Below are positions 20,149 to 25,520 of a stretch of 36,184 bases of DNA, piece after piece (position 1 is the first letter of the stretch; each line of letters begins with the position of its first letter). The notes under the pieces were generated by a model, which saw only the letters and a list, made by a program, of their open reading frames with translations, was not told where the DNA came from and did not search any database. The position numbers were made by a program, and so were the translations under genes. This stretch comes from Hyphochytrium catenoides (lineage: Eukaryota > Protista > Hyphochytriomycota). Location of the stretch: assembly GCA_900088475.1 (NCBI GenBank), contig FLMG01000615.1:1-36184 (forward strand). The letters run 5' to 3'.

Positions 20149-22839
20149 GAGTGCTGAGTTCCCCGAGTGCAATCATCTTCATGCAGAATTTTATAAAGTT
20201 TAGTGGATAGGGTAAGCAGAACACTTACGTTGATGTTTACTGAAGAACGTGAACAAACAAGAAGATTGTGGTAAAAGACAACACTGAAGGGGGAAGAGCC
20301 AGGTCATGCTTCGACAGGTTGATCTCTAAGACTGTTATGAGACCAGATGATTGGTGATGCATCTGCGATAAACCTTTCTTTAGTCGTGGTTCCCTCTGCC
20401 CCCAGTTCAGCCTTCATCATAGCTAGAGCATTTTAAGGGCTTACAGTCCCTCCTACAAACAATTCTTCTACGGTTCCTTATTTGGTAATAACTTGCAAAG
20501 GAACCAGACAAAACAACTTACTTACTACTAATCATCGAAGACGGAAGCGAACCAGTTTGCCAAAGAACTAGTAGCTGTCTAATTTTACCGGCACTAACAG
20601 TAATAGATCTGTAATAGGTTAGACTTCACCACTGACAATGGCCTTATTATCGCGCTCGCTACTCGCAGCATCCCTGACATTGATGTCAGTAGTCGTAACA
20701 AGCTTGTTTGCAATCTAGTAGTGCTTCTTGAAGTCTTCAGACAAAACATCAGCTACCTTAGGAACTATGTTCCCTATTCTTACAGCAACATTCCCTCCTT
20801 ACCGAAGCTAAAGCTAAATATTTATTCTTTCTTTACGGTGGCCAACCACGCACTGCTATACTGCCATCTGTAGTCTCAGACTGTTTGAACACCGGATCTG
20901 TTGGAATACTGGATTGCCTTCGGCTAAAAGCTTTTCTTCGTGCGATCGGTGCAATCTCTTATCGCTTTGACGAGTCATCGTTATTGGTCTTCGACAAACT
21001 GGCCGCTATCCTTCTGTTGGTTTGGGTGTTCTGGACCGATGCGGAAGGGTGATCATGCCTTTTCCCATCTGGTAAATGGTAGTTCTTGCATATAGTAGTG
21101 CGTGGTAGTAGTTGGGTGAAAGAAGCAACACCACTTGCGTAGGCCCAGCCTGGCTCAAACCCGATCGGGGGATGTCGTGGATAGATGAACTCCTCTACTA
21201 GTGTCCCTCAAACGCAGATCCCTCCAATATAGTCTGTTGCTTCTCCCTCTCTTTACACTTCCACTCCAGAACGAGAAGGAGCCAACAATACAAATGAATG
21301 GGGGCATATAACGTCTTTCACCGCAGTCCCCAAAGCCACATTAAGTCCTCCAGTTTCTCATTGCCTTTCCCCTTCCTTGACAGGAACGTTACACTCTTTC
21401 ATCTTGCCGCAAGCAAACCTAATGATGAAGGGACCAATTCCGGCCATTCCGAAGGGAAGCTCCAAGTCCAAGCCTTTGTGGCAGCTCCAGTCCTAAAAAA
21501 AAAAAAGACGATTGCTTAACTACTTCGTACTAAAACTCACAGCGCACGTGGAAGTGGATGTATTTCCTAGCCTAGCTAGCGGTCATTTAGTCATTTGGCC
21601 CCGACTGCCGGCCGCCTCGCCAATAGACCTGCTGCTGCCTTGCCGACAAGTCGATGTTGCTTCTCGCCCTCATGTTAGCAAAAGACGGTTAGAGGATAGA
21701 CGCTCGGGCACCACTATGGATGGCATGAACAGAAGCTAGCGTGGAAACTTATAGCTGTTCCGGACCATGCAGCGTAGTAAAAGGGTCCACCAATACCGTC
21801 TTTTACAAAGAGGCTCGTCCTCTACGCTATGACGCATTCCCTCTCCTTCCCATACGCATCCCTGTTCAATATACCTAACCAAGTAAGATGACGTGGCTCA
21901 ACTCTTCTTCCAGAGCGCGATGCGCGATGATCGCGTCTTGCTTCTTCTTGATAGAGTTGTTCCAGGTGAGCTACCACAGGAGGACAACTTTCTTGTTAGA
22001 TCGCTAGAGATAACGGTCAGAACATCAGAACGCAAACTCACGAAACATTTCCGAAAAATATTCCAGGAGGTGAATACTTCACACGAAGGTGGGGTGAAAG
22101 CGCCGATGGGGCGGGTGATCAAACTAGCGCCAAGTCTTACACAATGTATGTAGATGCGGGTGGGCTCATGTGGCAGATAACACCTTCCTGGACATAACTT
22201 TGGGGAGTGGAGTCTAGACCACTCACTCACGTTCTCTTGGCCTTGATAAGTATACATAAATACTAGGATAAGAGGTTTGAAAAAGCTCTGGTTTATATCA
22301 GCAGGTGCGCTACCCCTAAGAAATGTGGTCAAGTGGAACCATCCTGCGTAGTAAGACTCGATGGTACACTTAAGCCCTGTAATACCCATGATGAGTGTAA
22401 TAGTGGTTCAAGTAAGTAGCAGGTGAGTGCCTGATGCAGAAGCGCCAACCGCGGCCCTCGAGCCGCCGACGGTGCTCCCCCAGCTCACAGTTCATCGTTT
22501 CCAATCTCGATTTCTATTTGAAGCTTTATGGAGCTTTGAGAAGAAAAATCAGACAAGCTGCAGAAGTGCTATGGAGCAAGTATAGGCAGTCTACGCGATA
22601 GCGAGAACAAATCTACAGGGAGGGAGCTTGGCACCTAGCGCTCATAAGATCCTCAAAGCGAAGGTGGGTCTGGGAATCGTTAGTTTCCCCTGCAAAGCTC
22701 CATCGAAGGCAATCTGCTTGACGTTACATCGTTTCGTGTCCTTTCAGATCTACACGACTTGCTCCTGTCTACCGAAGCTATTGCTACGACAGCTGACCCA
22801 AACTTGAGCGCACCCTTTACTTACTGAAAGAAGGCAGTC

Positions 22840-24023
22840 ATGAGCAGGGGCAAGTGTAAGGTGAAGGATTGCCCCAAGTGGGCTGTTCAGAAGGGGGTCT
22901 GCACAACGCATGGGGCGAAACTCCGCCGATGTAAGATCGAGGGATGTTTGAAGGTTGCAAAGCAGGGCGGCGTGTGTATTGCCCATGGAGCCAAGGTATT
23001 TGGAACCGCCATGGACTATCTATCATTGAGTACTTGCTCAAACGTCCTTACCGACCTCCTTTACAGGTAAAGACTTGCAACGTCGAGAACTGCAGCAAGA
23101 AGGCTAAAGTAGGAGGAATGTGCGCGGCCCACGGAGCAAGTGCGAAGAAATGCTCCGTGGAGAATTGTCCAAAGACTGCTAGACAAGCTGGAGTCTGCGT
23201 TCAACACGGTGCTCGACCAAGGATGTGCACCGTTCCGGATTGTGAGAAATATGCAAAGCAAGGAGGTCTTTGTGTCACACATGGCGCGAAGATTAAGAGG
23301 GGTAGAACGAAGCGAACAGTGATTATTACGGGAGCCAGTAGCCCTGTTGGCACAGCTGCTGCCGTCCATCTTGCCAAGCAGAGGCACCGTCTCTTCCTCG
23401 TCGATAGAGACAGACTACGCCTTGAAGAGGTTGTCAAGAAGTGCTCAACAATGGGTCTTACAACTGCAGATATTGTATGCGGTATTGGCGATATAACCAT
23501 CCCCTCTGAGGTGCAAAGACTCTGTGATGAAGCTGCCAGAGCTTTTCCCAGACATTACGTTGAAGTGGCTGTCCTCAACGCAGGTGTGACCTCTCTTCCC
23601 CAGAATATTGAAGACGTACCGCCTGAAGAGTTTGACAGACAGTTTCTCCTCAACGTAAAGTCCGTCTTCCTCTTCATGAAGTACCTGGTTCCTGCTATGA
23701 AGTTAGGCAGATATGGACAATTCATTGTAACTAGTACTCCAGACGGCTTTAGCGGGACCCCAGGGGCAGCTGTAAATACCTCAACAAAGTACGCAATAGA
23801 GGGCATGGTATCGGCGTTACGCAGTGAACTGAAGGGTACAGGAGTGAAGGCAGCAGTGGTTAACGCATCACCCGCCAACGTCACTTGGAATGGAATTAAG
23901 GATATGAACCTCTTGCAGCCAGAACGGAACTTCCTGATGGATCCTCGGGTGTTTGCGACAGCCATCTCTACACTTGTCAATCAAGGCTCCATGCTTAACA
24001 TGGACAAGATCACGGTGGAGTGA
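22840..24023 (+). CDS. Five Cx4Cx9Cx2HG (WRKY19-like) zinc-finger repeats fused to a short-chain dehydrogenase/reductase-fold domain, 2 exons, ~370 aa
   Basis: Exons 22840-22995 and 23067-24023 (71-nt GT-AG intron, phase 0). Repeats: CKVKDCPKWAVQKGVCTTHG, CKIEGCLKVAKQGGVCIAHG, CNVENCSKKAKVGGMCAAHG, CSVENCPKTARQAGVCVQHG, CTVPDCEKYAKQGGLCVTHG. SDR hallmarks: 'VIITGAS', 'GDIT', 'VLNAG', 'LNVKS', 'KYAIEGMVSALRSELKGTGVKA'. Confidence 0.9.
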
Positions 24024-24989
24024 AAGCCTTCAGAGCCTGGCTCTGCCTCTCCCGATAGCAAGCCTATCTCTTTCTATCCCGAATGGGCAAGTCCTTACTT
24101 CCACCTTCTTTCTTCCTCCTCTCTCTGCTTTCATTCTCATCGTTCCACGCCGGTTTGTTGGGCGGTGGTTGAAAACTGTATGAGTGCGAGGTCCCGCTTG
24201 TATATCTTTAAGTTCTACTCTGTAATTTATGGCGGGTCAGCTGTGGCAGTCAAGCTGTTGCCGTCTCCACATCTTGAGCTTTTTATATGCATTGTTCTTC
24301 CTCTGAAATCGCATCTTTCCAGTGCAACGCTTACTTAAGCTGCCACTCGCCGACAATCGGTCGGGCCCGCTAGATTATTAGGCAGGAGTGAGTCAGAATA
24401 AGAGATGAACACGCAACATTAGAGTCTGGCAAGCATGTCGCTCTCTCCCGATATTTCATGTCCGCTTGGTAGACAACACGCAGTTGCCAACCAGGGGCGC
24501 TTTGTCTACCATTTTCTGTTTCTTTCTCTCTGTCCCTGATTCCTATCTACCTCCCCACCAGCTTTCCATCATAAAAACGCGCTCAGTCTTTCGCCTACAT
24601 CCTGGTCCCCGTCAGAGAGAAGAGATGATGTAACAGTTCCGCTGTGCCTGTCGGAACGCTTCAGCATACGATGGTCGTCCTTGTACCTGTACCAGAACAG
24701 TGCCTCGGTCGTTACATTTGTTTGGGCACACATAGCCGATGAGCCCAGCAGAAGCTCAGGAACTATTCGGCTCCCATCAGAGCGCATGTTAGATTGATGA
24801 CAGAAGTGCTTGTGAGTGGCCTTTGCTCACCTCTGATGCATCACTTCATGGGCAAACAATTGGTTCGCTGCCTTTAGGTCCTAGAGAGAACTACTTCCTA
24901 GTACTCCAGAGCAAGCTCGAGAGTGTCTATGTGCTCGATGTTGTTTGGCCTTCACCTTTGGTCCTGCATCAGCAGAGTCTTTGACTCCT

Positions 24990-25003
24990 CACTCTTTTCT
25001 TTC

Positions 25004-25034
<31 letters not shown>

Positions 25035-25098
25035 CCTCTCTCCCTCTCTCTCTCTTCCTCTCTTCCTCTCNNNNNNNNNNNNNNNNNNNNNNNNNNNN

Positions 25099-25130
<32 letters not shown>
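24990..25130. repeat. (CT)n microsatellite with assembly gap (N 25071-25098)
   Basis: CT runs flanking 28 Ns. Confidence 0.95.
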
Positions 25131-25132
<2 letters not shown>

Positions 25133-25365: not shown

Positions 25366-25380
25366 AGAGAGAGAAAGAGT

Positions 25381-25471
<91 letters not shown>

Positions 25472-25520
25472 GAAAGACAGAGAGACAGAGAGAGAGAGAG
25501 AGAAAGGAAGGAGAGAGATG
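25366..25520. repeat. (GA)n compound microsatellite
   Basis: GA/GAAA/GACA runs. Confidence 0.95.

Follow-up and report, generated by a model that had tools for sequence, protein, structure and literature searches.

A WRKY19-type finger array joined to a degenerate classical SDR domain in Hyphochytrium catenoides

A two-exon gene for a finger array and an SDR domain

The stretch of DNA analysed here, hereafter the window, is the 36,184-nucleotide (nt) contig FLMG01000615.1 of Hyphochytrium catenoides. Its sequence is eukaryotic in character: the GC content is about 49%, the introns are short and bounded by GT..AG, and there are CT/AG microsatellites. The forward strand carries at 22840-24023 a two-exon gene, whose product of 370 amino acids (aa), as given by the list of open reading frames (ORFs) and the spliced translation, joins five tandem cysteine/histidine fingers to a domain with the fold of a classical short-chain dehydrogenase/reductase (SDR). 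It is a real, lineage-restricted and currently selected gene of a protist of the stramenopile type, and its SDR domain has lost motifs for both catalysis and cofactor binding. The locus had been singled out in an earlier note on this DNA, and some of the claims of that note are taken up below. The features of the gene are as follows.

22840-22995, + strand: exon 1 (156 nt) with the start codon and fingers 1 and 2, aa 1-52 (ORF and spliced translation; Zf_WRKY19 at E 4e-14)
22855-22914, + strand: finger 1, aa 6-25, CKVKDCPKWAVQKGVCTTHG (regular expression and alignment of the units)
22930-22989, + strand: finger 2, aa 31-50 (regular expression and alignment of the units)
22996-23066, + strand: intron of 71 nt, GT..AG, phase 0, separating fingers 2 and 3 (predicted from sequence)
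23067-24023, + strand: exon 2 with fingers 3-5, the basic linker, the entire SDR domain and the TGA stop (single open frame; three Pfam Zf_WRKY19 units and adh_short)
23076-23135, + strand: finger 3, aa 56-75 (regular expression and alignment of the units; 61% identical array in Skeletonema marinoi P0099)
23151-23210, + strand: finger 4, aa 81-100 (regular expression and alignment of the units)
23226-23285, + strand: finger 5, aa 106-125 (regular expression and alignment of the units)
23286-23315, + strand: basic linker AKIKRGRTKR, aa 126-135, resembling a nuclear localisation signal (NLS), a putative role read from the sequence
23316-24020, + strand: classical SDR-fold domain, catalytically degenerate, aa 136-370 (adh_short, AlphaFold2, Foldseek)

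An in-frame TGA (22825-22827) stands 15 nt upstream of the start codon at 22840, the TGA stop occupies 24021-24023, and the coding frame is unbroken over 1113 nt. The predicted splice joins HGAK to VKTC, thereby restoring the 25-residue period of the fingers. The fusion itself is independent of the predicted intron because one uninterrupted frame (23067-24020) runs from finger 3 through finger 5 and the linker KIKRGRTKR to the end of the SDR domain. Nor could the SDR domain be produced separately, since M181, the first Met downstream of the fingers, is already inside it. An artefact of the gene model was considered and rejected on the same two grounds, the single frame of fingers 3-5 and the SDR domain and the lack of an internal start before M181. 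The earlier note had held that the fusion was no such artefact, having found three fingers and the SDR domain in one exon with an intact ORF, and at the level of the reading frame the fusion is indeed real.

The five units, each of the form C-x4-C-x9-C-x2-HG, begin at aa 6, 31, 56, 81 and 106 with an exact period of 25 residues. Pfam assigns them to Zf_WRKY19 (PF24906) with 81.3 bits for three units and 52.5 bits for the other two, against a cut-off of 27. The five WRKY19-like repeats and the NLS-like linker that connects them to the SDR domain were both described in the earlier note and are present as described there. The name WRKY19 denotes the finger type only, as the WRKY DNA-binding domain (PF03106) has no match in the protein at E up to 1. 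The N-terminal 133 residues contain exactly 15 Cys and 5 His, which would fit five CCCH zinc sites, and 29 Lys and Arg against 6 Asp and Glu, giving a net charge of about +23. The invariant C, C, C, H and G of the units are common to 43 arrays from other organisms. No repeats were found by a DNA-level search across the five fingers, and the units are mutually 40-60% identical as protein, so that they are old duplicates rather than the result of a recent expansion.

The remainder of the protein matches Pfam adh_short (PF00106) with 99.6 bits (cut-off 26.6) over aa 125-310 of the ORF. The AlphaFold2 (AF2) model has a mean predicted local distance difference test score (pLDDT) of 90, a predicted template-modelling score (pTM) of 0.78 and seven strands in the expected order, and Foldseek matched classical solved SDRs at E of about 1e-17 with TMt values of 0.75-0.94. 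The domain is complete, as the earlier note had supposed, and its fold is intact. The core strands and the helices alphaE and alphaF are the best-kept elements relative to the clade of closest relatives (0.39-0.65 identity). The substrate lid (aa 320-344) is the most diverged, with an identity of 0.07 to the clade compared with a within-clade conservation of 0.38, and it is the sole low-confidence stretch of the AF2 model.

Lost and kept motifs of the SDR domain

We compared the SDR domain with 241 homologues in two independent alignments, 123 of them collected by a word search and an exhaustive search and 118 by a profile search. The positions at which it departs from these homologues are the following.

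23328-23351, + strand: cofactor loop TGASSPVG, aa 140-147, with P145 in place of the second Gly of TGxxxGxG (Gly in 231/241 homologues, Pro in 0/241)
23736-23738, + strand: T276 in place of the catalytic Ser (Ser in 231/241 homologues)
23775-23789, + strand: N-T-S-T-K (aa 289-293) in place of YxxxK, with N289 and K293 (Tyr in 239/241 homologues, Lys in 241/241)
23865-23882, + strand: A319-S320...V324 in place of PGxxxT (Pro in 232/241 homologues, Thr in 207/241)

The catalytic tetrad Asn-Ser-Tyr-Lys is incomplete: N248 and K293 are kept, while Ser is replaced by T276 and Tyr by N289. In an alignment with Brucella FabG, whose structure is solved (6b9u), N289 falls on the catalytic Tyr. V324 stands where a Thr contacts the nicotinamide. 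Besides the two tetrad residues, T140-G141, G147, NAG (223-225) and D194 are kept. Judged by its sequence, the domain is shown to be without the residues needed for the canonical hydride transfer of SDRs. The earlier note had already reported the loss of the catalytic Tyr and the unusual TGASSPVG loop, together with the persistence of NAG and the Lys, and all of these read as stated; to them we add three lost positions, namely Ser to T276, PG to A319-S320 and Thr to V324. It had also counted the beta2 Asp among the retained features. The motif LVDRD is present, but its D165, which ends beta2 as Asp-Arg, is a change with respect to the 16 closest relatives, which mostly have Gly-Arg of the NADP type.

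The nearest SDRs to the domain are catalytically intact and 35-40% identical to it. The 16 closest form a clade of YdfG-like classical SDRs, some of which are named YdfG by their source, with 33-40% identity and the same fold and length; examples are P0117, P0137, KAJ7541718.1 of the lycophyte Diphasiastrum and EP00386_P007579 of the colpodellid Alphamonas edax. The clade and the protein described here have in common TGASS, GD(V/I), NAG, the tetrad N, GQ(I/F)(I/V)VTS, the K of YxxxK, LR.EL and GTGVKA. However, TGASSGxG is found in 16/16 members of the clade and the catalytic Ser, the Tyr and the Pro of NPG each in 14-15/16, whereas the present domain has P145, T276, N289, A319-S320, V324, a diverged lid and an Asp for the NADP-type Gly-Arg. 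The relatives are also stand-alone proteins of about 235-265 aa without fingers, apart from P0185, which has 313 aa including an N-terminal extension. A total of 40 columns are conserved in at least 14 of the 16 relatives; 30 of these are kept in our domain and 10 are changed, including G145P, S276T, Y289N and P319A.

Selection on the gene and its distribution

The whole gene was found in DNA runs of two samples or strains of organism A (X1 and X2), and fragments of the SDR part, 206-225 nt long and about 98% identical, were present in runs labelled as organisms B and C. Across the runs, 13 distinct coding differences were observed, and all of them (13/13) are synonymous third-position changes (P = 1.6e-7 under neutrality, with the mix of transitions and transversions considered); for the SDR part alone, the figure is 11/11 (P = 2.6e-6). 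Three synonymous changes in strain X2 fall within the codons of TGASSPVG itself, and P145 is kept. Alleles within a strain differ at 5/71 positions of the intron and at 11/165 positions after the stop codon. The pattern of differences shows that the gene is under purifying selection and that the protein with its degenerate motifs is being preserved and is not decaying.

A sequencing error at the Asn codon was also considered and rejected, as the same codon context is found in independent runs of the two strains with only synonymous differences. Compared with the window, strain X2 has two differences (22791 and 22798) in the 140 nt 5' of the ATG and six, all synonymous, in the 1113-nt coding sequence. 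Both DNA runs of organism A contain two allelic contigs at 22962-23079 (6 differences in 118 nt) and at 24030-24194 (11 differences and one indel in 165 nt). The part corresponding to exon 2 (23080-24029) is represented by one contig at about the summed depth, with zero allelic differences, even synonymous ones, in about 950 nt. Purifying selection alone does not explain this absence of synonymous heterozygosity, for which loss of heterozygosity or gene conversion over exon 2 is a possible cause.

An exhaustive phmmer search, with exon 2 as the query and 1.84 billion representative proteins as the target, gave 30,708 matches, the best 150 of which comprised 125 finger arrays and 25 plain SDRs, with no protein holding both domains among these 150. 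A fusion orthologue, if it were in this collection, would clearly outscore every match listed. Among the best 120 of the 5806 matches of a profile search with the alignment of the SDR clade, there was likewise no fusion and none closer than 38% identity. A word-index homology search with exon 2 found ordinary SDRs only, with identities of at most 34%, and a feature search and a fold search of the ESM Atlas returned plain SDR clusters only. Scanning the JGI/TARA metagenome contigs with the linker and the SDR part produced 15 loci, all of them generic SDRs with 23-37% identity, and no orthologue. The word-index search with the finger region gave two candidates and zero matches, a blank that is due to the word index and is no evidence of absence. 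The protein itself is absent from the collections searched and has no orthologue there. Literature searches on the finger family, on WRKY19 in protists and on pseudo-SDRs together with transcription found no account of the fusion. That the architecture was not one it recognised had been a remark of the earlier note, and it is borne out for the best matches of the sequence and fold searches, for the metagenome scan and for the searchable literature.

The fingers by themselves are far from rare. Arrays of diatoms and oomycetes have the same 25-residue unit, CS.EGC.N.A..GGVC..HGAK, at 40-61% identity and occur in tandem with 2 to at least 11 units, but none of the 125 finger-array matches checked has an SDR domain. 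The best matches, all from diatoms and oomycetes, include P0099 and P0104 of Skeletonema marinoi ('WRKY transcription factor 19' in UniRef) and P0116 of Thraustotheca clavata, the Skeletonema array reaching 61% identity over three units. All 103 of 103 related arrays carry Zf_WRKY19, and most of these proteins consist of fingers only. Partner domains are rare among the 103; they include the PTM/DIR17-type Tudor domain (4), Homeobox_KN (2), HSF, Myb, RRM, UCH, PARP, PDZ, the helicase-associated domain HA, a beta-helix and one AIF-type pyridine-nucleotide oxidoreductase. By their domain contexts, Zf_WRKY19 arrays appear as a promiscuous module that is widespread in diatoms and oomycetes, and the partners suggest a nuclear setting that may involve nucleic acid or chromatin. 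Weak matches to CxC6, the cysteine cluster of KDZ transposases, are given by 16 of the 103 finger-array proteins. The oxidoreductase mentioned above is P0116 (OQS07080.1, 1272 aa), which is annotated as 'apoptosis-inducing factor 1' and combines Pyr_redox_2 and AIF_C (aa 322-703) with at least nine Zf_WRKY19 fingers. It is a second case in which Zf_WRKY19 fingers are joined to a dinucleotide-binding oxidoreductase fold.

Outside the gene, about 1 kb downstream (25003-25132 and 25366-25518), there are long dinucleotide microsatellites of CT and AG with about 30, 17 and 77 copies, and the two CT arrays are separated by an assembly gap that shows up in the translated ORFs as consecutive X. A scan for bacterial promoters and terminators, which is not applicable to a eukaryote, gave nothing above shuffled sequences. 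Soil and rhizosphere metagenome runs (X4-X6 and X8) contain 9-14% of the sampled 31-mers of 22700-24200, a hint at soil as the habitat of the organism or of one closely related to it.

A proposed pseudoenzyme scaffold and the alternatives to it

How could a classical SDR domain with such losses be of use to a finger protein? The explanation that we favour, and to which we would give about even chances, is that the pseudo-SDR acts as a scaffold for the basic finger array. A pseudoenzyme kept for its shape is suggested because the losses hit the chemistry, the seat of the nicotinamide and the contact with the pyrophosphate, while the core and the helices through which SDRs usually oligomerise are kept and the gene is under purifying selection. 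SDR folds normally dimerise or tetramerise through helices alphaE and alphaF. The SDR part of the present protein would likewise form a dimer or a tetramer through alphaE/alphaF, and such a scaffold could bring two or four finger arrays side by side or attach the arrays to a partner. Targeting would fall to the finger array, and the target would probably be nuclear, either nucleic acid or chromatin. An SDR scaffold connected with nucleic acid is not without example, as CSP41 is a chloroplast RNA-binding protein of SDR fold without the classical active-site residues (PMC2792337). In CSP41, however, the SDR fold itself contacts the RNA, whereas here the separate basic finger array is the likelier part to bind nucleic acid.

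Several points weigh against this explanation. The kept K293, N248, NAG and D194, together with the NAD-type Asp of beta2, could still allow some binding of a dinucleotide by its adenosine half. No sequencing run recorded as RNA contains the gene; a single run marked 'RNA?' is a guess and has a contig of 206 nt. The intron is consequently a prediction from the DNA. A model of the fingers alone has a pLDDT of 86, and Foldseek found no match to it at E <= 0.001, the weak rows of C2H2 arrays (E >= 2, TM <= 0.32) not being meaningful; the wide search of VIA-align likewise gave nothing at Z >= 2. To go by this model, the fingers are without a recognisable solved structural relative. In the literature, we found neither a description of the Zf_WRKY19 finger domain nor a functionally characterised member, and with no solved relative and no characterised member, naming a target of the fingers is guesswork. 

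The earlier note had proposed a one-component regulator that senses the cofactor or a metabolite. On such a reading, the dead SDR would still bind a dinucleotide or some similar ligand, and its occupancy would alter the binding of the fingers, as NmrA, HSCARG and CtBP do in trans. We consider this unlikely, although there is precedent for SDR scaffolds as redox sensors. NmrA, NMRAL1 (HSCARG), CC3/TIP30 and MAT2B are non-enzymatic NAD(P)(H) sensors of SDR fold, and the known sensors keep the glycine-rich dinucleotide-binding motif (PMC2792337). Our protein resembles them in having an SDR-type Rossmann fold without the classical active-site residues, and the kept K293, N248, N223-A-G, D194 and T140-G141...G147, the acidic D165 at the end of beta2, the purifying selection on the SDR part and the joining of Zf_WRKY19 fingers to an AIF-like NAD/FAD oxidoreductase in P0116 would all suit a sensor. 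Nevertheless, NmrA-type sensors belong to the atypical/extended branch, keep dinucleotide binding, act on partners in trans and have no zinc fingers, whereas the present protein has a classical SDR domain with a damaged glycine loop and fingers fused in cis, and the NmrA-like family (PF05368) has no match in it at E up to 1. A sensor would be expected to combine an intact glycine motif with a lost Tyr. Here, the Tyr is indeed missing, but so is the Gly by which the pyrophosphate can come close to helix alphaB, its place being taken by a Pro found in none of the 241 homologues, and neither the PG nor the Thr for holding the nicotinamide is left. With the substrate lid as the most diverged segment, the pattern of losses fits a scaffold better than an NmrA-like sensor. 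What stands of the earlier proposal is the pseudo-enzyme fused to fingers; sensing has become the weaker part of it, and binding of nucleic acid by the fingers and a role of the protein as a regulator are at most suggested by the charge of the array and the domain partners of related arrays.

The pseudo-SDR might instead serve as a tether, forming heteromers with an intact SDR paralogue and bringing that enzyme to the target of the fingers, which we regard as doubtful and somewhat more so than sensing. There are documented heterotetramers of SDRs in which one subunit is inactive and structural, as in petunia benzaldehyde synthase, with its inactive beta subunit (PhBS-beta) beside alpha, in BbsC/BbsD and in KAR, where HSD17B8 is paired with CBR4 (PMC13418739). 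These subunits have, like our domain, a classical SDR fold with tetrad or cofactor residues substituted. Here, alphaE and alphaF, the helices of the interface, are preserved comparatively well, and eukaryotes do have the intact YdfG-like clade. On the other hand, the members of that clade are only 35-40% identical, with no sign of a recently duplicated partner, while the inactive heteromeric subunits are unfused, have a known active paralogue and show no counterpart to the finger array.

A third alternative is a ligand-gated, nucleic-acid-binding regulator, in which a remodelled SDR pocket would bind a metabolite other than NAD(P)(H) and switch the five-finger array through occupancy or through ligand-driven oligomerisation. 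The Pro in the glycine loop, the Asn-Thr-Lys centre and the new lid could be read as such a remodelling, but we hold this to be a long shot.

It is improbable that the domain has remained an enzyme with non-canonical chemistry, using T276, K293, Y294 or another residue, or catalysing a cofactor-independent reaction in the manner of halohydrin dehalogenases. The Lys and the Asn of the tetrad are kept, the gene is under purifying selection, and Thr can stand in for the catalytic Ser in some SDRs. However, most close relatives have His or an aromatic residue at position 294, so that Y294 is no compensating novelty, and five conserved functional positions have been lost at once. The SDR fold does support cofactor-free lyases, but halohydrin dehalogenases keep the Tyr and the Ser and change the Lys to Arg, which is the opposite of the pattern found here (PMC2792337). 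Least probable of all is a young, accidental fusion without function, whether a decaying gene or a coincidence of annotation: the protein is a singleton with no orthologue in the collections and is lacking from the RNA runs, but its 13/13 synonymous coding differences across strains and related organisms, its intact 1113-nt frame and the retention of 30/40 clade-conserved columns at 35-40% identity are unlike neutral decay.

Each of the two domains comes from a family already known, and pseudo-SDRs as such are established. What is new is the combination of the domains, which is absent from the best-scoring matches of every search; the loss of catalytic and cofactor motifs alike in an SDR that is classical, and not of the NmrA type, and is under purifying selection; and the fusion in cis of such a pseudo-SDR to fingers of a type abundant among diatoms and oomycetes and without known function. 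The reach of the finding is limited, as the protein is a singleton in one poorly studied lineage. If it is expressed, it would nonetheless offer a compact system in which to ask what Zf_WRKY19 fingers bind and why a classical SDR fold is kept without its chemistry. Should it prove to be a ligand-gated regulator, it would open up, for the first time, a functional approach to the Zf_WRKY19 fingers, which are a large family in stramenopiles.

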